Shown in pieces: positions 39,547 through 63,910 of a stretch of DNA of 64,000 nucleotides. This stretch comes from Dendrobates tinctorius. Its lineage: Eukaryota. Every line of letters begins with the position of its first letter. Positions within the stretch are counted from its first letter, which is position 1. Under the pieces are notes generated by a model. It worked only from the letters and a program-made list of their open reading frames with translations, did not search any database and had not been told where the DNA came from. The translations under genes were made by a program, and so were the position numbers. Location: assembly GCF_039654945.1 (NCBI RefSeq), contig NW_027361924.1, positions 11,036,001-11,100,000 of the forward strand, written 5' to 3'.

Positions 39547-40061
39547 AGTTTCACTTCCATTTTTGGCTACAGAATCTCAAAGTATAACTTTTTGTGCCTG
39601 CAGTCACCACTAGGGGGAGCACACTGCATACATGAAACTTAACAGTCTGCAGTGAGCAGCTGCCAGTGGGAGACTCTGAACCCCCCCCCCAGGTACTATA
39701 CTGGAAAATGTAAAAAATAAAAAAAAATTTCCCAAAACTTGCAAGTTTCCATCACCATGCTATTCCCCAAATGCAAATAGAGAGATAAAATCTAAAAAAA
39801 TATTTTGATAAACGCAATGGAGTTGTGCTGCAATACCAGATATTAAATTAAGTTGAACGAATCTGAGCAGCAATTCCACACACAGCCTTTAGACAGGGGT
39901 GGCGCTCTTTTTGAAAGGAAGACCAAAGATCGGGGACATAGCACATGAAAAACTGCGTCTGAATTATGAGGTTTCCCCTTTAAGTGCATGGTTCTGGCCC
40001 TGAATAATCTGACCTCTTCTCCGCCTTTTTTCCAAACTTACTTTCGCTTTTGAAACTGAAG
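39547..40061. promoter_or_regulatory. IRF/ETS-IRF elements upstream of IFI44-like gene 1
   Basis: rc GGAAGTGAAACT 39547-39558; rc AAAAGCGAAAGT 40040-40051 followed by GAAACTGAAG. Confidence 0.55.
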
Positions 40062-40092
40062 TATAGGAACAGCTGCAGCTTTATCTGTGACC

Positions 40093-40447
40093 ATGTATTG
40101 TGTAAAGACCGGGGGGTTTAAGATGGTGAATGCTTCTTCATCTCTGCGGCAGATCATTACTGAATACTATCCGGGTTGCACTTTGGGGAACATCAACCAT
40201 GGAATCCAGAGAGTCCTCCTGCTAGTGTTCGGGATGCTCGGTCACGGGAAGTCGTCGTTCATTAATTCTTGCCTCTGTGTAATGAAGGGCGGAGGATACA
40301 ACAACACGGCGCCTTCTGGCTCGAATTTGGGAGGATTGACCATGGAGAGAAAGGAATATGAACTGACCAACAATCTGGTGATGATCGATAACCGGGGGTT
40401 CAACAAGCTGAAGCCAACGGAGGTGCTAGAGATGCGCGCCCAGTTCA
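40093..40447 (+). CDS. IFI44-like 1, coding exon 1
   Basis: Walker A and DNRG; a|gtgagt donor. Confidence 0.85.
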
Positions 40448-43400
40448 GTGAGTATTCCAAAAGCACCTTAAAGGGGTTATGTGGCAGCACAGGACATGTG
40501 ACATGTATAACTGGCAAGTGTGTGCAGACGTCACGTCATCGGCACCGCTCACTTCTACATCTGGAGGTGAGCAGCACCGATCATGTCACATATATAACTG
40601 GCAGGTATGTGCAGACGTCATGTCACTGGCACCGCTCACTTCTACATCTGGAGGTGAGCACCACGGTCATGTCACATGTATAACTGGCAGGTGTGTGCAG
40701 ACGTCATGTCACTGGCACCGCTCACTTCTACATCTGGAGGTGAGCAGCACGGTCATGTCACATGTATAACTGGCAGGTATGTGCAGACGTCATATCACCG
40801 GCACCACTCACTTCTGCATCTGGAGGTGAGTAGCACAATCATGTCACATATATAACTGGCAGGTATGTGCAGACGTCATGTCACTGGCACCGCTCACTTC
40901 TACATCTGGAGGTGAGCAGCACGGTCATATCACATGTATAACTGGCAGGTATGTGCAGACGTCATGCCACTGGCACCGCTCACTTCTGCATCTGGAATTG
41001 AGTAGCACGGTCATGTCACATGTATAGCTGGCAGGTATGTGCAGACGTCATGCCACTGGCACCGCTCACTTCTGCATCTGGAGGTGAGTAGCACGGTCAT
41101 GTCACATGTATAACTGGCAGGTATGTGCAGACATCACGCCGTAAGCACCGCTCACTTCTACATCTGGAGGTGAGCAGCACCGATCATGTCACATGTATAA
41201 CTGGCAGGTATGTGCAGGCGTCATGTCACTGGCACCGCTCACTTCTACATCTGGAGGTGAGCAGCACCGATCATGTTACATGTATAACTGGCAGGCATGT
41301 GCAGACGTCATGCCACCGGCACCGCTCACTTCTACATCTGGAGGTGAGCAGCACGGTCATGTCACATGTATAACTGGCAGGTGTGTGCAGACGTCATGCC
41401 ACCGACACCGCTCACTTCTACATCTGGAGATGAGCAACACGGTCATGTCACATGTATAACTGGCAGGTATGTGCAGACGTCATGCCACCGACACCGCTCA
41501 CTTCTACATCTGGAGGTGAGTAGCACGGTCATGTCACATGTATAACTGGCAGGTGTGTGCAGACATGATGCCATTAGCACCGCTCACTTCTACATCTGGA
41601 GGTGAGCAGCACGGTCATGTCACATGTATAACTGGCAGGTATGTGCAGACGTCACGCCACTGACACCGCTCACTTCTACATCTGGAGGTGAGCAGCACCG
41701 ATCATATCACATGTATAACTGGCAGGTGTGTGCAGATGTCATGCCACCGACACCGCTCACTTCTACATCTGGAGGTGAGCAACACGGTCATGTCACATGT
41801 ATAGCTGGCAGGTATGTGAAGACGTCACGTCATCGGCACCGCTCACTTCTACATCTGGAGGTGAGCAACACGGTCATGTCACATGTATAACTGGCAGGTG
41901 TGTGCAGACGTCATGCCACCGACACCGCTCACTTCTGCATCTGGAGGTGAGCAGCACAATCATGTCAGGGGTATAACTGGCAGGTATGTGCAGACGTCAT
42001 GCCACTGGCACCGCTCAATTCTGCATCTGGAGGTGAGTAGCACAGTCATGTCACATGTATAGCTGGCAGGTATGTGCAGACGTCATGCCACTGGCACCGC
42101 TCACTTCTGCATCTGGAGGTGAGTAGCACGGTCATGTCACATGTATAACTGGCAGGTATGTGCAGACATCACGCCGTCAGCACCGCTCACTTCTACATCT
42201 GGAGGTGAGCAGCACCGATCATGTCACATGTATAACTGGCAGGCATGTGCAGACGTCATGCCACCGGCACCGCTCACTTCTACATCTGGAGGTGAGCAGC
42301 ACGGTCAAGTCACATGTATAACTGGCAGGTGTGTGCAGACGTCATGTCACCGACACCGCTCACTTCTACATCTGGAGGTGAGCAACACGGTCATGTCACA
42401 TGTATAACTGGCAGGTATGTGCAGACATCATGTCACCGACACCGCTCACTTCTACATCTGGAGGTGAGTAGCACGGTCATGTCACATGTATAACTGGCAG
42501 GTATGTGCAGACGTCATGCCACTGGCACCACTCCCTTCTGCATCTGGAGGTGAGTAGCACGGTCATGTCACATATACAACTGGCAGGTATGTGCAGACGT
42601 CATGCCACTGGCACCGCTCACTTCTGCATCTGGAGGTGAGCAGCACAATCATGTCAGGGGTATAACTGGCAGGTATGTGCAGACGTCATGCCACTGGCAC
42701 CGCTCACTTCTACATCTGGAAGTGAGCAGCACAGTCATGTCACATGTATAACTGGCAGGTATGTGCAGATGTCATGCCACTGGCACCGCTCACTTCTGCA
42801 TCTGGAGGTGAGTAGCACGGTCATGTCACATGTATAACTGGCAGGTATGTGCAGACGTCATGCCACTGGCACCGCTCACTTCTGCATCTGGAGGTGAGCA
42901 GCACAATCATGTCAGGGGTATAACTGGCAGGTATGTGCAGACGTCATGTCACTGGCACCGCTCACTTCTACATCTGGAGGAGTGCAGCACGGTCATGTCA
43001 CATGTATAACTGGCAGGTATGTGCAGACGTCATGTCACCGGCACCGCTCACTTCTACATATTGGAGGAGTGCAGCATGGATCAATCTTTGAGTTTGCGCT
43101 CAGTATCTGCTCCAAAAACTCAACAATTTTTGAGCGATTTTCCAGACGTGATTTTGGAACGGGCTTTCAAAACCTCTGTGTGCACATCATTTTAGGGTGC
43201 AGAACTGTCAAATTCGCTTGTGAATTTATTGTGTCCACATCATTGCCAGTTAGTCTTGTTTTCAGGGAGACCCCCAGTAATATATAGGGAAGCTGAAGAC
43301 CAGCTTTTCTATCAGACGGGTATTGGACAGTGGCCGATGACTTCTCAAACGTAGAAGAACGTTTAGGTTGGGATCAGACTTGCGAGAAACTCTCATGAGT

Positions 43401-46400
43401 CTCGCACCTCAACACCTGGCACTGCTGCTGGCACTCAGGACCAGAGCGCTCAGCTGCATAGAAATACATGCAGCCACACACTCTGGTCCCGAGTGCTGGT
43501 GGCAGTGCCGGATGTTGAGGTGTGAGACTCATGCGAGTTTCTCGCAAGTCTGACCCCGACTTTACAGGTCTATTACTCCAACCTCACCTTTCTAGTCTCC
43601 CATTAGGGCATCTTCGGGAATTGGGGGAAGTGACCTGGTCTGGAATATCCACAAGAGAAGCTTACAGAGTATATAATGAAGAGGAACGAAGAGAACCCAC
43701 AGATCTCGTGGTCCCTGTGTTTGTACAGAGGTAACAGCATTTTTATTTTTGCAATAATCTCATTTTTTTACTTTTTTTTTTTTGCTCAATGAACGGAGAT
43801 ATAGTGAATATCCAGGATATTCCCACACTGTAAGAACCGGGTGAGAATCACAGACCAGGATGTTCAAACTTTTCCTATTCTGATTGGAATGTGTCATCAG
43901 AAAATGATTGTTTATGTCAGAGTTTTGTGTTTCTTTTTTTTTTTTAAACATTTCTGGCCATTTTTTTTCTTATTATTAAAATGCAAATAGTTGTATCCTT
44001 GCAATTTTCACATTGGCCACTAGGGCATTTCTAGAATGATACTTCTTGAGTTTTCAGCAGTCTCATTGTCATTAAAGGCAGGATTACAATGGTAGGTAAC
44101 ACCTCTATACACAGGATTCACCAATCACAATAGGCAATGTTAAAGCTGGACCTTTACAATGAACTTTGTACTTCCTCATTAGATGCTTCAAAACAAAAGA
44201 TAGGGGCGGAGTATCTCCTAGCTGCTAATGTAAATGTGCATTTCCTGAAACAGCAGGAAGTTACCGAGAATAGAAAAGTCCCAGTGGCCGGTGTGAAACT
44301 TGCAAAATTTCTACTTAAAAAAATATACCGTATGTATTTTTGTGTTAAATCTAATATATATTTCAACAATAGGCCATTTCCTAATTATATATTCCCTTAA
44401 AGGTCCATTTAGACGAGACCATTTTGACCCATAACGAGTGCCAGAAGACTATGTACATATTGATTAGCACTTATTGGCGGTATAGAAATTATGGGAACAC
44501 ATTGGAACCTAATATGGTCATTCTGTGCTCATACAGGACCATTGTATCAGCAGCACATCCACTGTGTATACCAATAATCATGATTTTTATGCCATATAAA
44601 CCATCTAATCACTGATAAATGAGCATTTTGCTCTTTTCACCAGGTGATCGCTGACTTGATCAACGATCAGGAACTAGAGCTGTTCCAAAAGCTGGTTTGG
44701 CATTGTAGTCTCGGGTTGTCGCACCTTCATTTCGATTTTCTGCGCTTCTTCTCACACTCATCCTGCAATGTTCTCGCACTGCCTCTCTGAATTATGGTTA
44801 TTTATGAGAAGTGATTCTCTCCTCGGTTATTTTTTTATCATATTTTTTCTTTGATTAAGCAGAACGTGTCTGAAAGGAAACATTTTATTTCAGCTGCAAA
44901 ATGTTCTTGGATGAAAACGAAGAGAAGTTAATAGCAGACGCTTACAGCATCACGGGTAGGTGACCACTTTGCGTTTTTTGGTTAGACCTGCTTAGTAGAT
45001 GGAGTGACAGTCAATATCACAGGTAGGTGTCCGAGACTCGATGGTGCCACTCAACATGGCCGACAATATGCAACATTGTACTACATCCCCCATTTCCATA
45101 TCCTGACATATCTAGGATTACTCTTCTTCATAACCAGTAGGGTCTATAGTCATAGGAATACCTATAACCATGGAATAGTTTTTTTCCCTGGCGATTTGTT
45201 TGTAGTTTTTGATTAATTTCTGGGATAGGAAGTAGCTGGCTGATATCTACCACTGTCAGCCATATAAGCTTTTTATTTTAATGGCCGCCTGTCACGTCTC
45301 CGTCAGATTTGGGGCCTGCTGTTCCGGTCGCAGCCACTAGGAGGCGCCGGGCCGCCACTTCGCCGTCAGACTCGGGGACGGCTCTTCCTGCCTCGGCCAC
45401 TGGGAGGCGCCGTGGTTCTATTACATCGCCGTCAGACTCAGGGCCTATGGTCCCAGCTTTAGCCACTAGAAGGCGCCGGTCTGTCACGTCACCGTTGGAT
45501 TCGAGGCCTGCTGTTCCGGTCACGGCCACTAGGAGGCGCCAGACCGCCACTTCACTGTCAGACTCGGGGACGGCTGTTCCTGCCTCGGCCACTGGGAGGC
45601 GCCGTGGTCCGCCCGTGAGTTATGGTGGTGACAGAGAAGTGGCTCCTGCGCAGGCATCTGGTGGGCGCAGGCTCCGCCCCTCTGTCAGTCATCAGGGGGT
45701 TACTGCAACTCCATCTGGCCTGGTCCTGGGGGCGGCCCTAATGACATCACCAGTCCAGGAACCTGTGAGGGATGACCTGATCCCTCAAATACCTTGGGAC
45801 TGGTCTTGCAAGCCGCCGGATATATTCTTGGTTCCCCTGTGTGTTACTTAGTGATTGATTTCTGTTTGACTCTGACCTCAGCCTGGATTTCTGACCCCTC
45901 TTTTGCCTGACGATTCTGTACTTCTGCTACTCTCCTGGTTTGTGACCTTGGCCTGGATATTCTGACTCTGCTACTTCCTAACGATTCTGTACCTCTGCCG
46001 CCCTCCTGGTTTTTGACTCTGACCTTGGCCTGAAATTGACTCTGCTATTGCCTGCCGTTTTTGTACTTCACTCTGACGACCGTCCTGCTCTGGCCGCTGC
46101 TCCTATTCAGACAGTACCTCCTGGGCTCTGTTGTAAATCCAGATCCCTGTATAGGGGTAAAGGGTATCAGTGTTTCTCGGGGTGTTGCCTGGCTGCAGCC
46201 CAGAACCGCAGACGGACGTTACATTATATCCGGCCGTAAAATTAACTGCTTCTTGTGTATATACCCAACATATACAAAAGCAGTCTCCCTGAACTTTTTT
46301 TTTTTCTTCTTCTGACTGAGCTGATTTTTAGCCTGAACACCTGTTGCAGTGCACAGCCTGGAAGATCTCTCTCATTTTCTTGGACAACTATGCGGCAGTC

Positions 46401-49400
46401 TGGAGTCTTCAGGGAGAGAGCTGCACCTCAGAGATCCATGCTCCTGGCACGTCGACCTCTGGGCAACTACTCTGGCTATGGTTGCCCAGGGGCTCAGGTA
46501 TTGCCCGCAGATGCGGCTAAAGTTTTATTACCCATTTCAGTTTCATGTGGTCAGAAATCGCTGTGTTTAAACGCGTATGTGGATAGTGGCTCTGAAGGAA
46601 ATTTTATGGATTCCTTGACTGCTAGGAATCTGGGTGTAACTCTACTAAAACTTAATGCCCCTATTAAAACCACGGCTATTAATGGCACGTCCATTATTCA
46701 GGAGGGGGTTAAGTTTGTTACTGCCAAGGTTGCTATGTCTGTGGGAGCCTTACACACTGAGCTGGTGTCATTTTTTGTGATGGACAATTTAACCTCTGCA
46801 GTTATTCTGGGTATGCCATGGCTACGCCAGCACAATCCTGTCATCGACTGGCACTTGGGTGACGTTGTACGCTGGAGCCCACAGTGTCAGAAAAATTGCA
46901 TATCCTTGGCAGTAAACCAAGTTAAGGTTAAAACCCCCCACATACCGTTTGCTTTCAGAGATTTTGAGGATGTCTTTTCTATTGTAGAATCTGAAAAGCT
47001 ACCCCCTCACAGAGAGTATGATTGCCCTATTGATCTGATTCCGGATGCCCGTCTCCCTAAGGGAAGAATATTTAATCTCTCTGGCCCAGAGCGTCAGGCC
47101 ATGAATGACTATATTGCAGATAGCCTAAGAAAAGGGTTTATCAGACCGTCCATTTCTCCAGTTGGGGCCGGGTTCTTCTTTGTGGAGAAGGAAGATGGTG
47201 GTCTCAGACCCTGCATTGATTATCGGGAGTTGAATGCAATCACTATAAAAAACCAGTATCCGCTTCCACTCATCCCTGATCTTTTTAATCAGCTAACAGG
47301 AGCCCGTTGGTTTACTAAACTTGACCTCCGGGGGGCATATAATCTGGTCCGCATAAGAAAGGGAGATGAGTGGAAAACGGCCTTCAATACACCCCTTGGC
47401 CATTTTGAGTACCTGGTTATGCCGTTCGGACTCAGCAACGCACCTGCCGTATTTCAGCACTTTGTTAATGATATTTTTAGAGACATTTGTGGGGTGTATG
47501 TCGTGGTGTATTTAGATGACATTCTGATTTACTCTGCTGACCCTGTGACACACTCTCAACACGTCTGTTCTGTGCTACAAAGACTACGTGAACACTCCTT
47601 GTTTGCTAAACTGGAGAAATGTGTCTTTTTTGCTGAGGAGGTACAGTTTTTAGGATACATGGTTTCAGGTAAAGGCTTCCGCATGGATCCTGCCAAGGTC
47701 CAGCCTATTAAGGCTTGGGTGCAACCAAAATCGCTGAAAACGCTGCAGCGATTTTTGGGGTTCGCTAATTATTACCGCAAGTTTATTAGAGGTTTCTCAG
47801 AGATTGCCAAGCCACTCACGGATCTGACCCGGAAAGGGGCGGACGTGGCCAACTGGAATCCTGAGGCAATTCAGGCGTTTTCTACGTTAAAAGAGTTTTG
47901 TGGCCAACCCAGTTTTGGTTCAGCCGGATCTGGACCGTCCATTTATTGTGGAGGTGGATGCCTCTGAAGTCGGAGTGGGAGCAGTGCTATCACAAGGCAC
48001 TACATAACTCACTCTGCTTCGTCCATGTGCGTTTTTTTCCCGCAAATTCTCTCCCACGGAGAAAAACTATGATATTGGGAATCGGGAACTATTGGCAATT
48101 AAATGGGCCTTCGAGGAATGGCGTCACTTCCTCGAGGGCGCCAAACACAAGATCACGGTAATTACCGATCATAAGAACCTGACATACCTAGAATCAGCAA
48201 AAAGGTTAAATCCTAGACAAGCAAGGTGGGCATTGTTTTTCTCTAGGTTTAATTTTATAATCACCTTCCGCCCTGGTACAAAAAATGTGAGGGCCGATGC
48301 CCTCTCTCGCAGTTTCTGCCCCTCACAAGCCGAGGACTGTGAACCAGTTCCGATATTGGCCACTGGGATCATTGTGTCCGCAGTGTCATTGGACCTTCTG
48401 GAGGAGATCCGTAAATCCCCAGAACAAGCCCCTGACACTACGCCACCCAACAAATTGTTCGTTCCGCCTGCATTTCGCCTACAAGTACTTAGAGAATCAC
48501 ATGACTCTGTCTTGGCAGGCCATCCTGGTCTCAATAATACCGCCAGATTGATAACTAGGAATTTTTGGTGGCCGACGGTGGTTAAGGACTGCAAAGAATA
48601 TGTCTTAGCATGTGAGGTCTGTGCCCGTGCCAAGTCCTCCCATACTCGCCCTGCCGGCTGGCTCCAGTCCTTGCCCACCCCCGAGAGTCCATGGACCCAC
48701 ATCTCCATGGACTTCATTACGGACCTACCGTCCTCAGATGGAAAGACGTGTATCTGGGTGGTGGTGGACAGGTTCAGTAAACAATGTCATTTTGTCCCCC
48801 TGTCGGGGTTACCTAACTCGGAAACGTTGAGTAAACTGTTTATTGTACATGTGGTACGTTTACACGGTGCCCCGGTCAATATTGTGTCTGACAGGGGTAC
48901 CCAATTCGTGTCAAAGTTCTGGAGGGCGTTCTGTAAACGCATTGGTATTGAGCTATCTTTTTCCTCGGCTTACCACCCTGAAACCAATGGGCAAACCGAA
49001 CGTGTCAACCAGGCTCTGGAGCAATACCTTCGTTGCTACATCTCAGAACACCAGTCCGATTGGGCAGAACATCTGCCACTAGCCGAGTTTGCCCTAAACA
49101 ATCAGTATCAGGACTCCATTAAGTCTACCCCCTTTTTCTGCAACCACGGGCTGCATCCGCGCTTTGGCTCATTCTCGGCCAGAATATCGGAGCTTCCTGT
49201 GGTAGAGAAAAATATACATCGTTTAAAAACCATTTGGTCTGAGGTAAACTCTAACTTGAAAGGGGCCCGGGTTAGACAGACCTCAGCAGCGAACAAACGG
49301 CGATCCAAAGGACCGCACCTGGGAGTTGGAGACAAGGTTTGGCTCTCCACCAAAAACATCAAGCTTAAAGTACCGTCTGCCAAACTGGGTCCCAGATTTA

Positions 49401-51747
49401 TTGGTCCATACTAGATTATAGAGGTGATTAACCCGGTGGCCTTCCGTTTAAAACTCCCTCAGTCTTTCAAATTACCCAACGTCTTCCACAAGTCTCTCCT
49501 CAAGTTGTATCGCTCCCCAATTCACCCTGTCCCGTCCCCTCCTCCTCCCGTTTCGGTCGGAGGGTCCTTGGAGTATGAAGTCCAGGGTGTCCTTGACTCC
49601 CGCCTTGTAAGAGGGTCCGTACAGTATCTGGTACACTGGAGGGGATACGGCCCGGAGGAGAGGTCCTGGGTCCCTGCGCAGGACATCCATGCAAAAGCAC
49701 TAATTAGAAGGTTTCACCTCCTTCACCCTGACAAACCAGGTTTTGAGGGTCCGGAGGCCCCTCTTGGAAGGGGGGGTACTGTCACGTCTCCGTCAGATTT
49801 GGGGCCTGCTGTTCCGGTCGCAGCCACTAGGAGGCGCCGGGCCACCACTTCGCCGTCAGACTCGGGGACGGCTGTTCCTGCCTCGGCCACTGGGAGGCGC
49901 CGTGGTTCTATTACATCGCCGTCAGACTCAGGGCCTATGGTCCCAGCTTTAGCCACTAGGAGGCGCCGGTCTGTCACGTCACCGTTGGATTCGAGGCCTG
50001 CTGTTCCGGTCACGGCCACTAGGAGGCGCCAGACCGCCACTTCACTGTCAGACTCGGGGACGGCTGTTCCTGCCTCGGCCACTGGGAGGCGCCGTGGTCC
50101 GCCCGTGAGTTATGGTGGTGACAGAGAAGTGGCTCCTGCGCAGGCATCTGGTGGGCGCAGGCTCCGCCCCGCTGTCAGTCATCAGGGGGTTACTGCAACT
50201 CCATCTGGCCTGGTCCTGGGGGCGGCCCTAATGACATCACCAGTCCAGGAACCTGTGAGGGATGACCTGATCCCTCAAATACCTTGGGACTGGTCTTGCA
50301 AGCCGCCGGATATATTCTTGGTTCCCCTGTGTGTTACTTAGTGATTGATTTCTGTTTGACTCTGACCTCAGCCTGGATTTCTGACCCCTCTTTTGCCTGA
50401 CGATTCTGTACTTCTGCTACTCTCCTGGTTTGTGACCTTGGCCTGGATATTCTGACTCTGCTACTTCCTAACGATTCTGTACCTCTGCCGCCCTCCTGGT
50501 TTTTGACTCTGACCTTGGCCTGAAATTGACTCTGCTATTGCCTGCCGTTTTTGTACTTCACTCTGACGACCGTCCTGCTCTGGCCGCTGCTCCTATTCAG
50601 ACAGTACCTCCTGGGCTCTGTTGTAAATCCAGATCCCTGTATAGGGGTAAAGGGTATCAGTGTTTCTCGGGGTGTTGCCTGGCTGCAGCCCAGAACCGCA
50701 GACGGACGTTACACCGCCTTCGACTCAATCTCGAGCCATTGCAACTTGATAGATGAAAACTCTGTAGGAAGATTGATCTTGTGCAGCCTAGATAGGTCCA
50801 CCAGGGTCTTCTCTGTTATCTTGATTGTATCAAGCCATCGGGTTGCGGGTCTTCCTCTTAACCTTGCTCCTTCTATTCTTCTGACCATGATGTCCTTCTC
50901 CAGTGATTGCTCTATAAGGTACAAGGACAAATTCCTCTGTCACTTGGCCGCCCAGAAGTTCCTCCCCATTCCTTCCTTTAATTCTGTCTGACAGTCAGAT
51001 AAAACTGCCCGCTTCCTATGAAGCACTACTAAAATACAGGAGAGGAGCTGTCTGTGGAGGGAGGAAGTAGCTAACTTCTTGACCTACTGGTTCACGAAAG
51101 AAAACTAAACAGAAATAATTGTATTGGAAGGAGGTAAAACAATGGGACATTTATTGTGGGGTGTAGTGTGTAGCTATTGGCCCCATATCATAACTTAGAG
51201 GTTCTAGCCCATCACGATTACTAGTGAGTGAGTCCAGAACAATAATTCTTTTTCGTTTCGTCTTTTCTTTCTTTCTTTGGTTTCCATATTATTTGTCCAT
51301 CCCAGTAATTTACCTGATCTCCATGGAGGGTAGGATGGTCCCAATTATCTTTATGGGTTTCGCATTTTTAATCTTCTTGAAACCAGATCCATTCCACTAT
51401 GAGATTTTTTTTTTGTACTTACAGGAATTCACCCAATCATTGTGATCACACACTCGTCCTCCGGGAACTTTGGAGAATTTATCCAAAAGTTTGAAAAGTT
51501 AACGTCAACTCACTTTATCACACTGGAAAACTACACTAACGAGAACCCAAAACCAAACCCCGAAACTGACGGCAAAATCTTGGAGTTCCTACAGACGTGC
51601 ATTAAAGAAGCAGAGTCCAGAATTAAAAAGATGTCGGAAGAAGATCCAGCTGAGAGAATAGTTCAACAGACATCTCAGCAGGTTAATGAGGAGGCAGCAA
51701 GACTAAAGGAATCCCGTGATCGACTGCAGAAAGTTCTGAGGAAATAG
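40093..51747 (+). CDS. IFI44/IFI44L-like P-loop GTPase without TLDc domain, paralogue 1 (287 aa)
   Basis: join(40093-40447,43607-43730,44894-44955,51425-51747)=864 nt in frame; G1 [14 protein letters not shown]3 DNRG, G4-like PIIVITH, ENY...D.KIL.FL C-terminal block like IFI44. Confidence 0.75.
40489..43079. repeat. 61-62-bp minisatellite (~42 copies)
   Basis: catgtcacatgtataactggcaggtatgtgcagacgtcatgccactggcaccgctcacttctacatctggaggtgagcagcacgg-type units (unit length approximate, may be nearer 85 bp x ~30). Confidence 0.9.
43366..43561. mobile_element. Palindromic Harbinger-type MITE
   Basis: ggttgggatcagacttgcgagaaactc / gagtttctcgcaagtctgaccccgact; TTA TSD. Confidence 0.75.
43607..43730 (+). 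CDS. IFI44-like 1, coding exon 2
   Basis: [10 protein letters not shown]...DLVVPVFVQ, phase 1-2. Confidence 0.75.
44894..44955 (+). CDS. IFI44-like 1, coding exon 3
   Basis: [20 protein letters not shown], phase 2-1. Confidence 0.7.
45290..50713 (+). mobile_element. Ty3/Gypsy chromovirus (Tf1/sushi group) LTR retrotransposon, defective
   Basis: 934-bp LTRs 45290-46223 and 49780-50713 (TG..CA), 5-bp TSD CCGCC, PPT 49766-49777; PR (VDSGS), RT (YLDD), RNase H, integrase, GPY, chromodomain. Confidence 0.97.
46510..50341 (+). pseudogene. Gypsy pol with frameshift and stops
   Basis: Frameshift ~47893, TAA 48005-48007, TAG 49412-49414; last segment reads through into the 3' LTR. Confidence 0.9.
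50714..50920 (-). mobile_element. RTE-clade LINE 3' fragment (Gypsy target)
   Basis: [29 protein letters not shown] resembles the RTE/BovB C-terminus; probable tail lies left of the 5' LTR (~45268-45289). Confidence 0.7.
51425..51747 (+). CDS. IFI44-like 1, last coding exon
   Basis: ttacag|[10 protein letters not shown]...LENYT...RLQKVLRK*; AATAAA ~51914. Confidence 0.8.
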
Positions 51748-52431
51748 AGAAGTTCTGAAGGAACGTGTTATATCCCACAGAAGCGCAGATACCGGAAAAA
51801 AAGGACATTGAGCTTTTGCTTGTTGCACGTGCGGCTCTATTTGCAGCTCGCTGTTGCGATACTTTCCTCGTCTTTTGCGCCAATTGTAACTTTTGCATCT
51901 TTTCTTTGCAAAAAATAAAACAAAACATTCACTTCTGGCTGAAATTTGTAGTCTTTATTACTTTTACGAGAGCGTATATCTTCTTCTTTTCTTCACGACG
52001 TCATTAGTCTCCACCATCAGTTAGGGCCTGTCCAGGTTTGTTTGTTTTTTACATTTGGATGTCACAAAAAGAGGTGTTCAGACATACTCATTGGCGCAAA
52101 AGTGGTTAACAAATGTATACCTTTGACTAGGTTTTATCTAGACATATGGTTTTTTTGGGAGAACATGCAGTAAATGCACCAGCCATGCATTATTCTCAGC
52201 GTCCATCTTCAGGAGCGCACCGCTCCTCTGCCTCCTGGCTTCCTGTTTGCTGGGAGTCCGTGTGCTTCTGATGATTGACAGGTCGGCTATACAGCATGGC
52301 TGAGCCGCTGGTCCAAATGGTGAGCTCTCCCATGCTGCAAGCAAACCCTTTAACTGTCTATGGCATATTTCCCTGGTGTTACATCACGCACGTTCTTTGT
52401 CGCTTGGCAGAGTCGTCTGCATTGATACAAT

Positions 52432-53066
52432 GGGAATTTCCTTCCTGTAGTTTCCCCTTAAGTCCAGGTGAAAATGTTCTTCTCTTAATGTATATTTAAT
52501 ACAGAGAAGCTTCCACTAAAATCCAAAACTTTTACAACCTTTGAACTGTACCATAGATGTGACAAGAGGAATGATATTTAGAAGAGCAGATGATGACCAG
52601 AGAGGAAGGGGTAAATGCAGAGGTACTGGATCATTTTCACTTTCGCTCTGGATAAGATTCCAGTAAATACATTTGTGGTATTTGTTCTGGGTGTGGTGGC
52701 AAGATAAAGGGATTTAGAAAAAAATATCTGCAGGTTGCTATCAGACTTCTACATTTATATCTGTTTGTGTAGAAGCTGGGTGTCCAACAGCACAAAGAAT
52801 AATAAACACAAAAATCCCTAGTTTCTTTATCAATCCTATAAAAAATGAATGGAATCAGTACTGTGAAGAAGTCGCAGAAGTACTATTTGGCGTTGGTCTT
52901 CCCTACTGCTTGACCCCATGGCGGTGCCCATCACTCTGATCTTCAGTCTATATATATCACTGTTGTAATGTCATTTTCTAATGAAGACTTGTCTGAAATG
53001 TAAGATAGTCCTATATTCCAAACTCAATTTGTGTCTCAACCAATAGCAAAACTACAACTCCCAGAA
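52432..53066. promoter_or_regulatory. NF-kB + ISRE + ZNF143-like cluster
   Basis: GGGAATTTCC 52432-52441; TTTCACTTTC 52635-52644; CCAAT 53040; ACTACAACTCCCAGAA 53051-53066. Confidence 0.5.
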
Positions 53067-53375
53067 GATCCTAAGTGAAGGACAGTTAGCTCACTGTATC
53101 TTCTGTGGTGATCGTCATCGGTCAACACTAAATAGGAAGATGATGATGATGAAACTCATGGTTTGCAGGAATCAAATATATAACATTGAGAAGGAAAAAA
53201 TACATAGAAGGCAATTGCCAAAATAATACCGCCTGTTGTGCACAAGGATGTAATTATACTGGCACCTGTGGACACAAATATTGATACTTTAATACTGGAC
53301 ACAAACATAGCAACAATAAAATAATTGCTTATGGCAAAGGAGCATTATTTGTAGTCGTTATTCTCTTGAACATCA

Positions 53376-55805: not shown

Positions 55806-56739
55806 GGTTAATTTTCTACATAAGGCTACTGTCACAAGGTTACTGCCACGGAGCGGAGCTAGAAGACCGCAGCGTCCGGTTGCTCCTACTCTGTTGCTGA
55901 GAAAAAAGCACATCTCTGGTTTATTAAACATTAAACATGTTTATTCCTTCCAGTAGAACAGGGGTTAATCGGCCATGTTGGAAATCGCTGTTCTCAGCTG
56001 CGCTCGGTTAGTCACTTCTTTTCCCTGTATAATCTGGGCTCTAAGGCTGGAGTCATACTAACCTGCGCAAAATACGGTCAGTATTTTACATGCGTAATAC
56101 GGATGATAGACCCCTAAACAGTGCTCCGTATGTCATCCGTAATCAAGGTGTGGTTGCGTATTTTGCGCATGTAAGCATCCGTATGGCGAGATTTTCTCGC
56201 AGGCTTGCAAAATGGACATATAATGGAGCCCTATGACAGTTTTAATAAAGAAACATGGATTTTTGTGAGTACTCACCGTAAAATCCTTTTCTCCGAGACG
56301 CTCATTGGGGGACACAGAGACTGTGGGTGTGTGCTTCTGCCGTCTGGAGGCCGACACTAAGTGTACAAAAAAAGAGTTAGCTCCTCCTCCGCCGCATACA
56401 CCCTCGCCCCTAGGCCGGGCGTAACTCAGTTTAGTGCATAAGCAGTAGGAGAACGCGCCTTAAACTCAGGCAAGAAACTATATGTCTGAAAAAGGGGGCC
56501 ACCCTAAACCTTGTACAAGGATTTGTAAAACTCAAAATAAGTAAATGCCAACTGGCTGATAGGGTGGGTGCTGTGTCCCCCAATGAGCGTCTCGGAGAAA
56601 AGGATTTTACGGTGAGTACTCACAAAAATCCATGTTTCTCCTTCGTCTCATTGGGGGACACAGAGACTGTGGGACGTCCTAAAGCAGTCCTCTGGGCGGG
56701 ATCTTAGCTCACCCAATCCCTGCTAATTTGCGCCCCTGA

Positions 56740-59700
56740 TTAGAGGTGCGCAACTGCTGCCTGGAGAATCTTTCTTCCCAGGCTTGCATCCGAGGATGCC
56801 TGGGTATGTACGTTATAATGTTTGACAAACGTATGTAAACTGGACCAGGTAGCTGCTTTGCATACCTGCTCCGCTGAAGCCTGGTGTCGTAGTGCCCATG
56901 AGGCACCCACTGCCCGTGCCGAGTGAGCCTTGATCCCTGCCGGAACCGGCGTGCCACTGATTTGATAAGCTTCTTGGACCGTCAGGCGAACCCATCTGGC
57001 CAAAGTCGCTCTGGACGCAGCGAGCCCCTTCCTCCGACCCTCTGGAACCACGAATAGAGCGTCTGTCTGGCGGAATGGCGCCGTCCTTGTCACATACCTC
57101 CTAAGAGCTCTTACCAGATCCAGGGTGTGCAAAGCCTTCTCTACCCTGTGCACCGGTGCCGGGCAAAACGAGGGTAAGACGATGTCTTCGTTGATATGAA
57201 ATGCAGACACAACCTTCGGCAAGAAGGGGGGAGCTGGCCTTAAAACTACCTTATCCTTATAAAAGGTTAGGAACGGTGGTTTACAAGATAAGGCCGCCAA
57301 TTCCGAAACCCGCCTAATAGACGTTATGGCTACTAGAAAAACGACCTTTCTGGACAGGTAAGGTAAGGAGACCTCTTGCAATGGTTCGAAAGGGGCCTCC
57401 TGAAGGACTCTGAGCACCAAATTCAGGTCCCATGATTCCGTCGGCGCCTTATAGGGGGGTACTAAATGTGCGACCCCCTGCATAAACGTCCTAACCTGCC
57501 AGACGGAAGCGACTTTTCGTTGGAAAAGTACCGACAGGGCCGAGATTTGCGTTCTGAGGGAACTCGGGGCCAACCCTGCGTCCAGCCCTGCCTGTAGAAA
57601 AGCCAGTACGTTGGGGATCGAAAAAACCAGAGGAGCCACTTCACGATCCCTACACCAACGGAAGAAAACTTCCCAAGTCCGATGATACACCCTCGCTGAG
57701 GAAGGCTTTCGGGCACTCACCATCGTGGCCGCCACATCGCGTCTGAATCCTGCCTGTGTTAACAGCCAAGATTCAATGGCCACGCCGTCAAACACAGGGC
57801 CCCTAAGTTCGGATGGCAGATCGGCCCTTGGGACAGTAAGTCCGGCCGATCTGGAAGACGCCAGGGTACGTCCACCACTAGTTGGACCAGATCTGCGTAC
57901 CAGGCCCGCCGGGGCCAATCTGGGGCCAGCAGAATTGCTGGAACCTTCTCTCTCCTTATTTTCCTGATAACTCTTGTGAAGCAGCGGTAGCGGGGGGAAC
58001 AAGTACGGGAGACGAAACTGGCTCCACGGGAGCACCAGCGCGTCTGCTGCGATTGCCTGCGGATCGAGGGATCGAGCGACAAACCTTAGTACTTTGGCAT
58101 TCTCTCTGGATGCCATAAGGTCCACGTCTGGTGTCCCCCACCGTTGGCAGATCTGCTGAAAGATCTCGGGGTGCAGGGACCATTCCCCTGCCGCGACCCC
58201 CTGTCGGCTGAGAAAATCTGCCGCCCAGTTTTCGACTCCTGGAATGTGCACCGCTGAAATTACCACGCGGTTCTTCTCCGCCCAACGTAGTACCAGTCCG
58301 ACCTCGCGCATGGCTGCCTGGCTGCGCGTGCCCCCTTGATGGTTGACATATGCTACTGCTGTCGCATTGTCCGTCTGGATGCGCACCGGCCGGTGTCTCA
58401 GGAAACACTGGAAATGTTGTAGGGCCAATCGTATTGCCCGTATCTCCAGAATGTTGATCGGGAGAACTATCTCCTGAACGGACCACCGCCCCTGGGCTAT
58501 GTGACTCTGGAAAACTGCCCCCCAACCTTGCAGGCTTGCATCGGTCGTCACCACCAACCATTGTTCCGGGGGAAAGGGTTTCCCCTGGACCAGAGACGAG
58601 TCGCGAGTCCACCACCGGAGTGAACCCCGTATCAGCGGAGACAACTTGCACCGATGACTGAGAGACAGCAGCCTCCGGTCCCATGCTGTCAAGAGCGCAT
58701 GCTGAAGCGGACGGAGATGGAACTGGGCAAACGGGATTGCTTCTATCGCCGCCACCATTCTGCCCAAAACACTCATGCCATACCGGATGGATCTGGAGCC
58801 CGGCTGTAGAAGGTTCCGTATCCCTTGCTTGATTTTTTGCGCCTTGTCCTGAGGGAGGATCACCAGCCCCCGGGAGGTGTCGAAAATCATGCCCAGGAAC
58901 ACGATTTTTTGGGCTGGAACTAAAGACGACTTGCTCCAATTGATCAGCCAGCCCAGACGGGCCAGGGTATCCAGAGTAATACTGACATTGTCCTGGCACT
59001 CCTGAAACGACGGCCCCTTTACCAAAAGGTCGTCCAGGTAAGGTAACACCGTTATGCCCCGTGCATGCAGGATGGCCATAACCACCGCCATTATCTTTGT
59101 AAAGACTCTGGGGGCAGTGGCCAGACCGAAGGGCAGAGCCACGAATTGGAAGTGACGTCCTCCGATCGCAAATCGCAGGAACCTCTGGTGTGGGGGGAAT
59201 ATCGGAATATGCAGATATGCATCCTGCACATCGATTGAGGCCAGGAATTCCCCTGGATCCATGGCTGCAATGACCGAGCGGAGGGATTCCATCCGGAATC
59301 GCCTGACCCTGATGAATCTGTTTAGGATCTTTAGATCCAGAACCGGCCTCACAGTCCCGTCTTTTTTGGGGACCGAAAAAAGATTGGAGTAAAACCCCTG
59401 CGACTCTTCGCCCTGCGGCACTGGGGCGATGACCCCTTTGTGCTGTAGCGATGTTACAGCCTGTAACAAACTCTCTGCCTGCGCATCTGTTTTGGAAAGT
59501 CGCGAACGGAAGAATCGCTGAGGTGGCCGTCCTACAAACTCTATCTTGTACCCGGACGATACAAGTTCTGCCACCCAAGTGTCGCGTGTCACTGCGACCC
59601 AAACGTGGCTGAACCTTAGTAGGCGTCCGCCCACTCTGTCGTCCGTAGGTACGGAGTGCCTCCAGTCATTTAGCTGGAGGCTTTTGGGGCTTGGCCCCCT
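56740..59700 (-). CDS. DIRS RT-RNaseH-methyltransferase joined to tyrosine recombinase by a 1-nt indel
   Basis: PFGLATAP, YLDD, TTDAS, QTDN, DLMAS..YLFPP; YR R..HSAR..W..Y. Confidence 0.85.
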   Translation of the reverse strand, partial: RGPSPKSLQLNDWRHSVPTDDRVGGRLLRFSHVWVAVTRDTWVAELVSSGYKIEFVGRPPQRFFRSRLSKTDAQAESLLQAVTSLQHKGVIAPVPQGEESQGFYSNLFSVPKKDGTVRPVLDLKILNRFIRVRRFRMESLRSVIAAMDPGEFLASIDVQDAYLHIPIFPPHQRFLRFAIGGRHFQFVALPFGLATAPRVFTKIMAVVMAILHARGITVLPYLDDLLVKGPSFQECQDNVSITLDTLARLGWLINWSKSSLVPAQKIVFLGMIFDTSRGLVILPQDKAQKIKQGIRNLLQPGSRSIRYGMSVLGRMVAAIEAIPFAQFHLRPLQHALLTAWDRRLLSLSHRCKLSPLIRGSLRWWTRDSSLVQGKPFPPEQWLVVTTDASLQGWGAVFQSHIAQGRWSVQEIVLPINILEIRAIRLALQHFQCFLRHRPVRIQTDNATAVAYVNHQGGTRSQAAMREVGLVLRWAEKNRVVISAVHIPGVENWAADFLSRQGVAAGEWSLHPEIFQQICQRWGTPDVDLMASRENAKVLRFVARSLDPQAIAADALVLPWSQFRLPYLFPPLPLLHKSYQENKEREGSSNSAGPRLAPAGLVRRSGPTSGGRTLASSRSAGLTVPRADLPSELRGPVFDGVAIESWLLTQAGFRRDVAATMVSARKPSSARVYHRTWEVFFRWCRDREVAPLVFSIPNVLAFLQAGLDAGLAPSSLRTQISALSVLFQRKVASVWQVRTFMQGVAHLVPPYKAPTESWDLNLVLRVLQEAPFEPLQEVSLPYLSRKVVFLVAITSIRRVSELAALSCKPPFLTFYKDKVVLRPAPPFLPKVVSAFHINEDIVLPSFCPAPVHRVEKALHTLDLVRALRRYVTRTAPFRQTDALFVVPEGRRKGLAASRATLARWVRLTVQEAYQISGTPVPAGIKAHSARAVGASWALRHQASAEQVCKAATWSSLHTFVKHYNVHTQASSDASLGRKILQAAVAHL

Positions 59701-61108
59701 TCGCTCTGGGTAAATGGCCTCGGCCTCTACCCAGCGGATTGGCCCTGTAAGAGACTTGTTTTTCCCTACTCTGGCCATCGTTTGCGGAGGAGTACGCCCT
59801 GGCCGAAGTCCCCCCCCAGGGGCTACGAAAGGGGCGAAAACGCCTCTGCGTTTGCCTGAATGCCGGGCAACTTCTCTGCTGCGGAAGGAAACTACTTTTA
59901 CCCCCTGTGGCTTCTGAGATAAGCCTATCCAGCTTCTCACCGAACAGTCGATTGCCCTGAAAAGGCAATGAGGTTAAGGATTTTTTAGAGATAGAATCCG
60001 CTTTCCACAGTCTCAGCCATAATGCACGCCTAATGGCGATCGCATTCGCCGCCGCCACCGCCGAGCACTCGGCCGCGTCTAGTGAGGCGCTGACAAGATA
60101 ATCACTTGCTCCTGACATCTGATTTGCCACTTCTAAGACCTCCGCGGGGAGATCCCTGTCCTGGAGGGCCTTATACAGAGCGTCCCCCCACGAAACCATG
60201 GCCTTAGCCACCCAAGTCGCCGCAAAGGAGGGGGCCAGAGCCGACCCTGCTGCTTCATATACCGAGCGGGCAAGCCCGTCCATGAGGCGATCAGTTGGGT
60301 CCTTTATAGAGGAAACACTGGGTATCGACAATAGCGATCTTGATGCTAAACGTGATACCGGAGGGTCCACTACTGGCGACTCTACCCAAGCCTTATGGAG
60401 CTCAGGGGGAAACGGATACTTTGCCTGCAGCGCTTTTTGCATTGCAAAACGCTTATCCGGGTGATCTCTATGTTTCTGGACTAGCTCCTCAAACTCCGGA
60501 TGCGTGGCAAATCTTCTATGTGGTCGCCTGGATTTCTTAAAAGAGACCTTGTGACCTGAGACTGTGGGCACATCGTCCTCGATCTCTAATGTCTGGTTGA
60601 CTGCCTCAATGAGACTGTCCACCGAATCCTGGAACCCCAGACTTTCTAGATTCCAGGCCTCTTCCTCCTCTCCTTCATCCTGATCGCTCCCAGAGCTCAG
60701 AGACGGGGAACGGGATGCCCTAATACCCGCCGCCGAAGCCCCGGAGGGTCCGGCCGACGGGGAACGAACCCTCTTGATATGAGCTTGCCTGGTACTGGAG
60801 CGACCTCTAATGGTTGGAGGGTCCTGAGACGAGGACGAGCTCTCTTCCGCTGGCAGACCCCCCTCCCTGCTCCTGCCCGGGCCCTGAAGGGATTCAATTG
60901 CCCTTGTAAGGGACAGCATAGACTGCGATAAGGACACCGCCCATTCCGGGGGGTCCTGACCCCTGGGTTCAGAAACAGTGGGGGGCTCCTGGGCGCGCTC
61001 CGACTCACAGGCTTCACAATATTTACCCGCCTGTGCCTTTGGCAGCCTGACCCCACAGGACACGCAAACCGCGTAAAGGAAAGAGTGAGCTTTCCCTTTG
61101 GCAGACAT
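59666..61108 (-). CDS. DIRS ORF1 (gag-like), 480 aa
   Basis: ATG 61108, N-terminal CxxC..CxxC, PVVDPPV and RRALWL...LPFQGNRLFG blocks. Confidence 0.85.
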   Translation of the reverse strand: MSAKGKAHSFLYAVCVSCGVRLPKAQAGKYCEACESERAQEPPTVSEPRGQDPPEWAVSLSQSMLSLTRAIESLQGPGRSREGGLPAEESSSSSQDPPTIRGRSSTRQAHIKRVRSPSAGPSGASAAGIRASRSPSLSSGSDQDEGEEEEAWNLESLGFQDSVDSLIEAVNQTLEIEDDVPTVSGHKVSFKKSRRPHRRFATHPEFEELVQKHRDHPDKRFAMQKALQAKYPFPPELHKAWVESPVVDPPVSRLASRSLLSIPSVSSIKDPTDRLMDGLARSVYEAAGSALAPSFAATWVAKAMVSWGDALYKALQDRDLPAEVLEVANQMSGASDYLVSASLDAAECSAVAAANAIAIRRALWLRLWKADSISKKSLTSLPFQGNRLFGEKLDRLISEATGGKSSFLPQQRSCPAFRQTQRRFRPFRSPWGGTSARAYSSANDGQSREKQVSYRANPLGRGRGHLPRAKGAKPQKPPAK

Positions 61109-62689
61109 ACTTGCACAGGCTGAAGGCAGAGTAGAAGGAGGAGGAGGGTAACCTCTTCCGTGACAAGCAGCGTGGTTCTCCAAAACGGAGTTACACTCAC
61201 CCACCGGCTCCTGTCCGCAGTACCCCTGCGTGGATGCGAGGCGTTAGGGCGGAAGACTCTCCGGAACCTATATCGCGCGTCTCCGCATTCGCCGCCTGCC
61301 ACCGCCGCGTCAGCGGGCGGGACTTCCGGCTACCACCGGAAGTCAGCGGGCGGGACTTCCGGCTACCACCGGAAGTCGGCGCGCGGCCTCGCGCGATTGC
61401 AGTGGGGCCGCGGCCGCCGGCGGGCCTCCGGCCGCGCTCCACCAGCCCCCGGCGATACACGCGGCGTGCGGAGCCCGGGTCACCAGCGCCAACTTGCGGT
61501 GCGCTGCAGGAACAGATCGCCCCATATAAGAAAAGGTGAGCAGGACCACCTCGGGGGGTGGGTGGGGGGGGGTGCTCTGTCGGTTTTACTCGCGGCCTCT
61601 TCCCCACTTCTATCGCCGCCCCCGCTCCCGCTCTCACCTGCGCCTCCGATTCAGCCCCCTGGACTCACAACCAAGGGGTGGACGGGGCCTCCATACTGCT
61701 GTAGTAGGAGAGGAACAACGTGGAGGCTGACCACTGGTTCTGCTCACACGCGCCTGATGAAGTTGTGGGGAAACCGAGTCCTCTAATCAGGACGCGTTGC
61801 CCCTCTTTCGATAAAAAATAGATGTCTGGAAAAAAGTCCCAGATGTGTCCCTCGGTGCGGGAGAGGACACGTGGAGGGTTACTCACACGTGGTCGCCCGT
61901 TGGTGATTTGGGGAGATCGGATCCTCTCTATAGGATCCGTCGCCCCTATCTTATCTTCATAGAAAGAAAGGGAAAAAGAAAAAAAAAAAAAAAAAAAAAC
62001 CTAGTCTGGAACTCCAGACTGCGTGTGCCTCCATCAGACACTAAGCAAAAACTGAGTTACGCCCGGCCTAGGGGCGAGGGTGTATGCGGCGGAGGAGGAG
62101 CTAACTCTTTTTTTGTACACTTAGTGTCGGCCTCCAGACGGCAGAAGCACACACCCACAGTCTCTGTGTCCCCCAATGAGACGAAGGAGAAAGAAAGAAT
62201 AGATATAGACACATAGAATGCATATATATATATATTTATATGTATTCTATGTGTATATATCTATTCTTTCGTTTCTTTATTACACCTGTCAGTGTCAGTT
62301 TACTGTATAGCGCACTGAATTGCCACCTTTGCTAAAAGACACCGGGTGCGTATTTCTCGCAAGTCACATGTCTGGTCCGTGTGTAATCCGTATTTTTTGC
62401 GCACCCATAGACTTGCATTGGTGTATTATGGCCGTAGTACGCTGACAGTCCCAGCATGCTGCGATTGGCACGGAGCGTAGAATACGGATGAGAAATATAC
62501 GGCTGGTGCGAGGGACCCCATAGAGAATCATTGGTCCGTGTCTAATGCGTGCTTTTAGCGCCTCTCACTCTCCCGTATTCCTCGCCAGTGTGACCCCGGC
62601 CTAATACTAATCCTCGTCAGAGTTACGGTAGCTTTTTGCTGCATGACAAAAGGAGGTAGAGATGTTGATATGAGGAGAGCTAGAGTTAT

Positions 62690-63069
62690 CAGTGACTGTT
62701 GTTTGGTTTGTACACTTGATAATCCCTTATTCTTCCCTGTTTTGCTTTATTCCCCCTCCCTACACATCCCATTGGACTCCTCTGTTATATATGAGTGAAT
62801 ACTTTGTGTGTGTGGAGTTTTCAGTTACCCCTTGTCTTTGTTGCCCTGTTTGTCAGGTTGGTGTACTGAGGTGCACAGGAGCGCCCCCTCTTTCCTGGGT
62901 GGGAGAGAAAAGACGAAGGGCTATCTTAGGAGATAAGGCAAGGCCGGAGGCCCCGGCGTCTTCACCATCTGAAATATCCCGAGGAGCAGGGTGAGCTAGT
63001 GCGCCCCCTAATGTTAGGGCCAGGAAAGGCACCCCTGGTTCCAGGTCATTCGACAGCTGTGTCGTGACA
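62690..63069 (+). mobile_element. Probable degenerate LTR fragment
   Basis: U5-like segment ending gtcgtgaca; 5' boundary not found. Confidence 0.35.
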
Positions 63070-63600
63070 GCTACATTGAGGCAAAGTGCAATGTATCTGC
63101 ACCTGTACACATATCTGTAAATATTTTCATCCCTTCCTTGTAAACAGCAGGAAGAATCTTGTAATTACACACGGTCTCAAGAACTTTGCCATTTTTATTA
63201 CCTTTCATGCAAATTCTGCTTGCATATTATCCGTGCTTCACAGTTCCTGAGGGCTGTGGAATTCTCTCGGAAGGCAGGTAGGTCCAATATTTGTGCAGCT
63301 ACATTATTTCTACCTTAAAATGGATTCTTTTTTGTTGGGTTCGGTGGATTTTATTCCTCATGTTTCTTTGCAGTTTAGTGCACCAGCTGTTGTGGGACTA
63401 CAACTCACAGCATGTCCTTACAGTCCGTCCACTCAACTCTCAGAGGCTGAACTTGTATTATTGAAGTATTTAATACTTTATGTGGGTTCACTCCATGGGT
63501 GCAGAATATTATAACATGTAATTTTCATTAAAGGTGACTTTGGTATTACGCCTAATAAGTGCATTAAATATTTTGTAGGTTTTTAGGTCTTTTCTTGTTG

Positions 63601-63910
63601 ATGGCGGACTCTGTAAGCAATGACGCATCATTGCAAAGGATCTCTGATTACAGGCCGGGACCTATGTATGAACAGGTCAGCCTGCAATTATTTGGGATGC
63701 AGGGGCACGGTAAATCCTCTTTTATTAACACGTGCATGAATATTGTCCACGGAGGAGCCTTTACAAATGTGGCTGGATCTGGGAAGTCTGACAAACCCAT
63801 CACAATGGAGAGAAAGGACTATAACCTGTCATCTAAAGTGCTCATCACCGATAACCGAGGGCTTGGCAAAATGAGCCCGGAAGAGCAGGAAGAGATGGCC
63901 GCCCAGATGG
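63601..63910 (+). CDS. IFI44-like P-loop GTPase paralogue 2, first coding exon (continues beyond window)
   Basis: [18 protein letters not shown]...ITMERKDYNL...ITDNRG; phase-1 donor at the same position as in paralogue 1. Confidence 0.85.

Follow-up and report, generated by a model that had tools for sequence, protein, structure and literature searches.

Two neighbouring P-loop genes in the frog Dendrobates tinctorius raise the question of which GTPases they are related to, and whether either of them is a gene of innate defence. They lie in a stretch of 64,000 nucleotides, here called the window (NCBI RefSeq assembly GCF_039654945.1, contig NW_027361924.1, positions 11,036,001 to 11,100,000 of the forward strand), in which a sequence-only reading had described a tandem cluster of IFI44-like GTPases without a TLDc domain and with interferon-type regulatory motifs. 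Here we describe the two genes, paralogue 1 and paralogue 2, their promoters and their relatives. With somewhat more confidence than doubt, we favour the reading that paralogue 1 responds to IRF or interferon signalling, and that its product acts as a nucleotide-binding switch or assembly unit in cell-intrinsic defence.

Paralogue 1 and its IRF-type element

Paralogue 1 consists of four coding exons on the plus strand, at 40093-51747, downstream of RABEP2, and was delimited by tblastn of P0001, a public Dendrobates tinctorius "uncharacterized protein", combined with a reading of the splice sites. The coding sequence is 864 nt long with its stop, all introns are GT-AG, and the 287-aa product is 100% identical to P0001, so that the intact 287-aa open reading frame claimed from the sequence is real as a spliced coding sequence. 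Coding exon 1 (40093..40447) carries the P-loop GMLGHGKSS, the switch-I Thr and a G3 motif that reads DNRGF, corresponds to P0001 residues 1-118 (100%), and ends in a phase-1 donor (GCC CAG TTC A, then GTGAGT, at 40447/40448). Coding exon 2 (43607..43730) reads ...VFVQ and has an AG acceptor and a GT donor; coding exon 3 (44894..44955) was placed by tblastn and splice sites; and the last coding exon (51425..51747) encodes a charged helical tail and the stop TAG at 51745-47. The start codon is ambiguous, because in Mixophyes, Bufo and Hyla the orthologous proteins start from the counterpart of the second in-frame Met, ATG 40123, which would give a product of 277 aa; the true start may be this ATG instead of ATG 40093.

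Directly upstream, at 40037..40061 on the minus strand, lies an IRF-binding-type element that is unique in the window, with a minus core CAAAAGCGAAAGTAAG (40037-40052) overlapping a plus-strand GAAACTGAAG (40052-61). The sequence-only reading had placed an IRF element about 40 bp before the ATG of paralogue 1, and the sequence it pointed to, TTTCGCTTTTGAAACTGAAG, occupies 40042-40061, i.e. 32-51 bp upstream of ATG 40093, and is best read on the minus strand; in short, the candidate site is AAANNGAAAG. The strict core of the interferon-stimulated response element (ISRE), GAAANNGAAAS, has no match at this site and 2 matches elsewhere in the window, which is not above chance. Seven orthologous promoters, representing six genera, carry the motif AAA[AG]N[TC]GAAAG[TA]A in the same orientation, 34-144 bp upstream of the ATG. 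In Ranitomeya and Phyllobates it takes the form AAAGTGAAAGTAAC and sits within a promoter block that is 82% conserved overall, so conservation among dendrobatids only would say little. Outside the dendrobatids, the element reads TAAAAATGAAAGTAAG in Mixophyes, TGAAAATGAAAGAGAA in Bufo and AGAAAATGAAAGAGAA in Hyla, and the Bufo and Hyla promoters match the strict core. Because AAANNGAAAGW occurs in just 16 of the 2107 150-bp windows into which all the DNA examined, promoters included, was divided, a chance origin of the motif in four independent lineages is very unlikely. The conserved site thus makes an immune role of the gene testable, without demonstrating such a role.

A second and weaker ISRE-like site, GGTTTCCCCTTTAA, is present at 39970..39983 on the minus strand and has a counterpart in Ranitomeya, TAAAGGGAAACC, also on the minus strand. 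Its spacing is broken by one extra base in Dendrobates, and it is only a lead. The annotated 316-aa Phyllobates protein begins 27 codons further upstream (L003:10001-10081), running through the region that holds the IRF element in the other species; an 8-bp deletion probably explains this start as an artefact of annotation.

Paralogue 2 and the history of the pair

Within the window, paralogue 2 is represented by a short exon of the 5' untranslated region (UTR) and the first coding exon only. The latter (63579..63910, plus strand, ATG 63601) is spliced at both ends and encodes the P-loop GMQGHGKSS and the G3 motif DNRGL. Its donor is again in phase 1 (GCC CAG ATG G, then GTATGT, at 63910/63911), at the same codon position as in paralogue 1, and the two first coding exons share 44% identity over 99 aa (E 2e-25), in agreement with the earlier claim of two paralogues with common motifs and a common first-intron position. 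Is paralogue 2 a working gene? Its exon 1, or part of it, is present in 18 small public runs from eight studies, and the contigs of 4 of these runs (three studies, two organisms) were aligned to 62900-64000. In all 4 runs, one contig covers exactly 63577-63912 and then continues into unlike sequence at either end. The upstream overhang (…TCTCGGAAGGC) matches the window at 63265-63275, which places the end of a short 5'UTR exon at 63277, before a GTAGGT donor, and its splice junction at 63579. The downstream overhang consists of the identical 30 letters in 4/4 runs, CACATGCGCAATCACAGTGCAGTAAAATGG, which continue the frame as G HMRNHSAVKW, and this peptide is homologous to exon 2 of the family (QMRGQSTVEW in Hyla, QLRGRDRVEW in Bufo, and the counterpart in paralogue 1). 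Spliced contigs at such depth, in runs of 43-98 million letters, could hardly come from genomic DNA. Therefore paralogue 2 is transcribed and spliced, and its later exons lie past the end of the window. Over the parts that the window covers, both genes are intact.

The core promoter and the short 5'UTR exon of paralogue 2 occupy 63207..63277 on the plus strand, with an octamer ATGCAAAT at 63207-14 followed by a TATA-like CATATTAT and, after the exon end at 63277, GTAGGT. The octamer with its conserved flanks (CCTTTCATGCAAATTCT) and the TATA-like box about 10 bp further on were found in Dendrobates (63207-63231), Ranitomeya (L002:23927) and Bufo (L006:964), and not in the 1.1 kb covered for Hyla. 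An octamer followed by a TATA-like box is the arrangement of immunoglobulin promoters. An IRF-type site like that of paralogue 1 is not present at this promoter. Paralogue 2 would be under a different control from that of paralogue 1, possibly constitutive or lymphoid. The conserved promoter of this type and the presence of CD19 near the locus would both suit a second reading of the pair, namely that these are GIMAP/AIG1-like lymphoid GTPases, constitutive in B cells or other lymphocytes, and not interferon effectors. However, octamers drive ubiquitous genes too, and the IRF site at paralogue 1 speaks against this reading, which is taken up again below with the fold.

Directly beside the paralogue-1 orthologue of Bufo bufo and of Hyla sarda stands a paralogue-2 orthologue, with an exon-1 identity to paralogue 2 of 71% and 66%, respectively; the pair is therefore older than the split between these three frog families. 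With the spliced contigs of paralogue 2 and the conservation of the pair in Bufo and Hyla, the claimed tandem cluster proves to be a real tandem pair. In Ranitomeya, two paralogue-1 copies flank one paralogue-2 exon-1 copy, a sign of copy turnover at the locus. In R. imitator this copy (L002:24316-24624) has CG where the AG of the acceptor would stand and lacks 1 bp five codons upstream of the donor, and exon 2 of paralogue 2 was not found in the Ranitomeya loci within 10 kb of it; the copy may be a relic or an assembly error. This layout had suggested that paralogue 2 is an alternative first exon, an idea that was rejected, as the contigs run into a paralogue-2-specific exon 2 and complete paralogue-2 genes exist in Bufo and Hyla. 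For exons 1 and 4, paralogue-1 orthologues compared in pairs give ratios of nonsynonymous to synonymous substitution (dN/dS) of 0.47-0.63. The proteins thus evolve fast, under what we judge to be weak purifying selection, which is common in immune genes. In Mixophyes, a further family member stands head-to-head with the orthologue P0006 (L005:4937-7340, minus strand), and the numbering of the genes there, LOC142098617 to LOC142098619, points to three or more of them in a tandem array.

The direct neighbour of the pair is RABEP2, and not CD19, next to whose locus the pair had been placed from the sequence. The gene call with the Rab5-bind domain ends about 2.2 kb upstream of paralogue 1, and RABEP2 also precedes the paralogue-1 orthologue in Ranitomeya imitator and Phyllobates terribilis. 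A nesting of the pair inside a RABEP2 intron was considered and rejected, since the RABEP2 call has already ended at that distance. Intron 1 of paralogue 1 contains a minisatellite (40484..43076, an 86-bp unit x 30, 91% matches) that begins 37 bp past the exon-1 donor and has several open frames, hence many spurious open reading frames (ORFs). Intron 3 contains a Ty3/gypsy-type long terminal repeat (LTR) retroelement (45289..50338, plus strand) with protease, reverse transcriptase, RNase H, integrase and chromodomain; it is young and in sense orientation, its LTR copies start at 45289 and 49779 and are 99% alike, and its coding frames are broken into three ORFs. Between the two paralogues, at 56743..61204 on the minus strand, lies a further retroelement, probably DIRS-like, with a 1066-aa ORF containing a reverse transcriptase and a 512-aa ORF containing a LAP2alpha-type domain.

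Fold, family and mechanism

Which GTPases are these proteins related to? Pfam, run on the single exons and on full P0001, gave only sub-threshold matches to MMR_HSR1 and IIGP, both on the P-loop part; IIGP (PF05049) reached 13-16 bits against a cut-off of 24, which is short of the IRG model. No TLD (PF07534) was found at E<=1 in P0001, in the exon-1 read-through or in five ORFs from the 2.2-kb stretch that separates RABEP2 from paralogue 1, and the upstream gene call is RABEP2, so the description of the genes as TLDc-less stands. No AIG1 (PF04548) match was found for P0001 at E<=1 either; the AIG1 model matched a single frog GBP fusion, weakly and under the cut-off (1e-4). Nothing significant came from searching PDB sequences, whether the query was one exon or a profile of 55 sequences. 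The model predicted from the 55-sequence alignment (mean predicted local distance difference test, pLDDT, 79.6) has a G-domain core followed by two long helices, 226-253 and 255-286. These helices form the charged tail which, like the ITHSS at the G4 position, had been noted from the sequence, and both are indeed present. Aligned by VIA-align to solved structures, the model matched EngB, IF2, Toc33, Era and Rab with Z 13-15 over 144-188 residues at a root-mean-square deviation (rmsd) of 2.6-3.5; by this measure, the predicted fold is that of a generic TRAFAC-class GTPase.

A comparison by Foldseek with IFI44, GIMAP and IRG had been proposed as a check by the sequence-only reading, and in it the predicted fold agreed much better with IFI44 clusters than with GIMAP or IRG. 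Against the PDB, the best matches were GIMAP2 and GIMAP7, Toc34, IRG and EF-Tu, with template modelling (TM) scores by query of only 0.36-0.46. Among the Atlas cluster models, the family's own clusters came first (TM 0.67-0.73), one of them auto-named 'AIG1-type G domain'. Clusters named IFI44 came next, with TM by query 0.67-0.68, 235 residues aligned (residues 16-262) and an rmsd of 3.5, both sides being predicted models. In these IFI44-named clusters, 79-82% of the members have a Pfam TLD. A chordate cluster of 286 aa without TLD, which bears the name "interferon-induced protein 44-like", has a language-model feature score of 0.94. Thus the best solved matches and the one cluster name add to what favours GIMAP-like lymphoid GTPases, but the GIMAP scores (TM 0.36-0.44, Z 12.6-12.8) are no better than those of EngB, IF2 or Rab, and with the lack of any AIG1 match for P0001 we consider this reading quite unlikely.

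The fold match to the IFI44 clusters, the closeness of the TLD-less 'IFI44-like' cluster by features and a motif logic in common with IFI44 would suit yet another reading, in which the genes are true co-orthologues of IFI44/IFI44L whose TLDc exons were lost in amphibians. It is here that the extent of the family matters. Word-indexed searches returned 356-413 significant proteins, of which the 120 listed were each time all anuran and nearly all "uncharacterized". An exhaustive profile search returned 384 representatives with E<=1e-3, of which 192 were at or below 1e-10 and 104 at or below 1e-30. P0001, a member by construction, fits the family profile across the whole G domain (G.GKS..NS, T, DNRG, V.W, TG..PI.V.T, NYT), and exon 1 of paralogue 2 matches family members at E 1e-20 to 1e-25. 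For the best 150 profile matches (down to E 2e-16), names were looked up for 30, and Pfam was run on 30 longer proteins. The non-frog members named in this way come from sharks and a chimaera (E 1.7e-43, 2.9e-27), lungfish, sea urchins, crinoids, Hydra and Clytia. None of the 30 longer proteins scanned has a TLD, and immunoglobulin (Ig) and GBP domains are found instead. TLD-less cnidarian, echinoderm and shark proteins match at 1e-17 to 1e-43, which argues that the family existed without TLDc before the vertebrates; since molluscan proteins with both TLD and G domain exist as well, both architectures are old. On these grounds, with 30 longer proteins of the best 150 matches scanned for TLD, a loss of TLDc exons in amphibians is distinctly improbable. 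The interpretation most consistent with the profile searches is that this is a separate, old and unnamed metazoan G-domain family, no amphibian invention, with hundreds of anuran genes. Of the claim of a lineage-expanded amphibian family, the expansion in frogs holds and the restriction to amphibians does not, given the shark, lungfish, echinoderm and cnidarian members. Similarly, the label IFI44-like holds for the fold, which is nearer to IFI44 than to GIMAP or IRG, and is not supported as membership in the IFI44 family by the 30 longer proteins scanned. Most of the family expansion sits elsewhere in frog genomes, outside this pair.

The domain also occurs in other settings. In lungfish and sea-urchin members, V-set and C2-set Ig domains (butyrophilin- or CD80-like) lie N-terminal to the G domain, an arrangement that resembles a receptor whose cytoplasmic part is an IFI44-type G domain. 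The Ig-fused relatives are P0254 (Protopterus), P0255, P0258, P0234, P0236, P0256, P0240, P0249, P0262 and P0263, with names checked for lungfish and Diadema. In seven named frog species, one annotated protein joins the GTPase domain of a GBP, roughly two thirds of GBP_C (~205/297 positions) and a C-terminal family G domain, and an eighth such fusion, in Pristimantis, was found by precomputed Pfam domains. These fusion proteins are P0141 (Bombina, L008:10001-75495), P0161, P0181, P0142, P0148, P0193, P0206 and P0324. In Bombina, four family-type exons lie 16-18 kb past the GBP exons. Literature searches on the Xenopus LOC identifiers of family members and on amphibian GBP fusions gave no matches.

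The C-terminus and the G4 position also differ between lineages. Short echinoderm members end in CaaX-like boxes (CRIL, CVVM, CILL, CNIL) and cnidarian members in CC or CCCN, which suggests lipid anchoring; vertebrate members have no such ends, and the frog proteins have the charged tail in their place. The C-termini were read in P0231, P0244, P0211, P0237, P0257, P0239, P0248 and P0251, with CTIL also among the CaaX-like ends; P0257 is labelled as derived from an amoeba transcriptome and may be contamination. The G4 motif T[HK]xD is retained in invertebrate members (THID, TKED, THRD, THKD, THLD, TKKD), and the aspartate is gone in the shark, lungfish and frog members examined (THATEI, TRKSLG, THSSSG, TNKTSG). 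In 55 frog sequences, G47, G50, G52, K53 and S54 of G1, the switch-I T83 and D99-N-R-G102 are invariant, which argues for retained binding of phosphate and Mg.

From these features a mechanism can be envisioned. Both genes would encode cytosolic P-loop proteins of about 260-290 aa, with one TRAFAC-type G domain and a charged two-helix tail. Paralogue 1 would be turned on by IRF or interferon signalling, and its product would bind nucleotide via the P-loop, with relaxed base specificity, and contribute to innate defence as a switch or assembly unit that depends on the nucleotide, where the helical tail could mediate self-association or partner binding. The same domain, wired onto GBPs and Ig-type receptors in other lineages, suggests by analogy a similar modular use. 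More broadly, and tentatively, since we give it rather less than even credence, it can be hypothesized that this is an undescribed pan-metazoan IFI44-related G-domain family, ancestrally lipid-anchored, which was repeatedly recruited as an immune module: in Ig receptors (sea urchin, lungfish), as a C-terminal GBP add-on (frogs), and in hundreds of free-standing and partly IRF-driven anuran genes.

Several points weigh against an interferon-responsive, nucleotide-dependent effector. The Dendrobates site is not a strict ISRE, could fall in the 5'UTR of paralogue 1, and would fit a constitutive lymphoid use of the IRF4/8 type equally well. The GBP fusions could be read-through gene models, considering the 16-18 kb gap in Bombina. 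The link to IFI44 comes from a match between predicted folds and from embedding similarity, and none of the longer relatives scanned carries a TLD. Finally, with the G4 aspartate lost, guanine nucleotides may be bound weakly or not at all, and in IFI44 a deletion of G1 does not abolish the antiviral activity, so that G1 is dispensable for the restriction of respiratory syncytial virus (bioRxiv 10.1101/2020.02.24.963900). The last two findings would also favour nucleotide-independent scaffolds, or pseudo-GTPases, in which the G domain serves as a fold only and the tail does the work, as the aspartate is lost in all vertebrate members examined and kept in invertebrates. Against such scaffolds stands the invariance of G1, T83 and D99-N-R-G102 in the frog sequences, and we regard them as unlikely.

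Comparison with named GTPase systems

Ranaviruses and chytrid fungi press hard on frogs, whose repertoire of interferon effectors is poorly mapped, and the locus offers a way into a large family of genes labelled only "uncharacterized" in every frog genome. The contrast within the pair, with a conserved IRF site at paralogue 1 and an octamer promoter at paralogue 2, amounts to a testable switch, and the history of the domain ties IFI44-type G domains to GBPs and Ig receptors. If paralogue 1 is induced, the family would be one more lineage-expanded system of immune GTPases beside IRG, GBP, GIMAP and GVIN; if it is not, this would be an ordinary fast-evolving gene family. Should the wider reading of a repeatedly recruited metazoan module be true, the frog genes would correspond to what the expansions of IRG, GIMAP and GVIN are in other vertebrates. 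In addition, the family could shed light on the obscure biochemistry of IFI44.

In the case of GIMAP/AIG1 and Toc34, the likeness lies in the TRAFAC G-domain fold, for which they are the best solved Foldseek matches, and the difference in the low TM scores and in the absence of an AIG1 Pfam match for P0001. GBPs are inducible by interferon, and some frog GBP proteins are predicted to end in the family G domain. GBP1, GBP2 and GBP5 end in CaaX boxes, and invertebrate members of the family have CaaX-like ends. However, the family G domain is not homologous to the large GTPase domain of GBPs, and the genes in the window are not GBP-fused. The TLD-less 'interferon-induced protein 44-like' Atlas cluster (286 aa, 89 members) is of the same size class, also without TLD, and has 187/256 features in common with the frog protein, but it is known only by its automatic cluster name.

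The comparison with IFI44/IFI44L is the closest. The frog proteins differ in having no TLDc, in their length (~280 aa vs ~445 aa) and in their charged coiled tail, and the family counts invertebrate members and fusions of its own, with no TLD-bearing protein among the matches examined. Nevertheless, IFI44 and IFI44L have a G1 of the form GxxxxGKS and a DxxG followed by a hydrophobic residue, with an incomplete G4 in IFI44 (bioRxiv 10.1101/2020.02.24.963900), and the frog proteins have a single G domain with GxxxxGKS(S), DxxG plus a hydrophobic residue, and a degenerate G4. The predicted fold over residues 16-262 agrees, and the IRF-type promoter element of paralogue 1 would fit an interferon-stimulated gene. 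Judged by predicted fold, the nearest named kin of the family is the G domain of IFI44/IFI44L.

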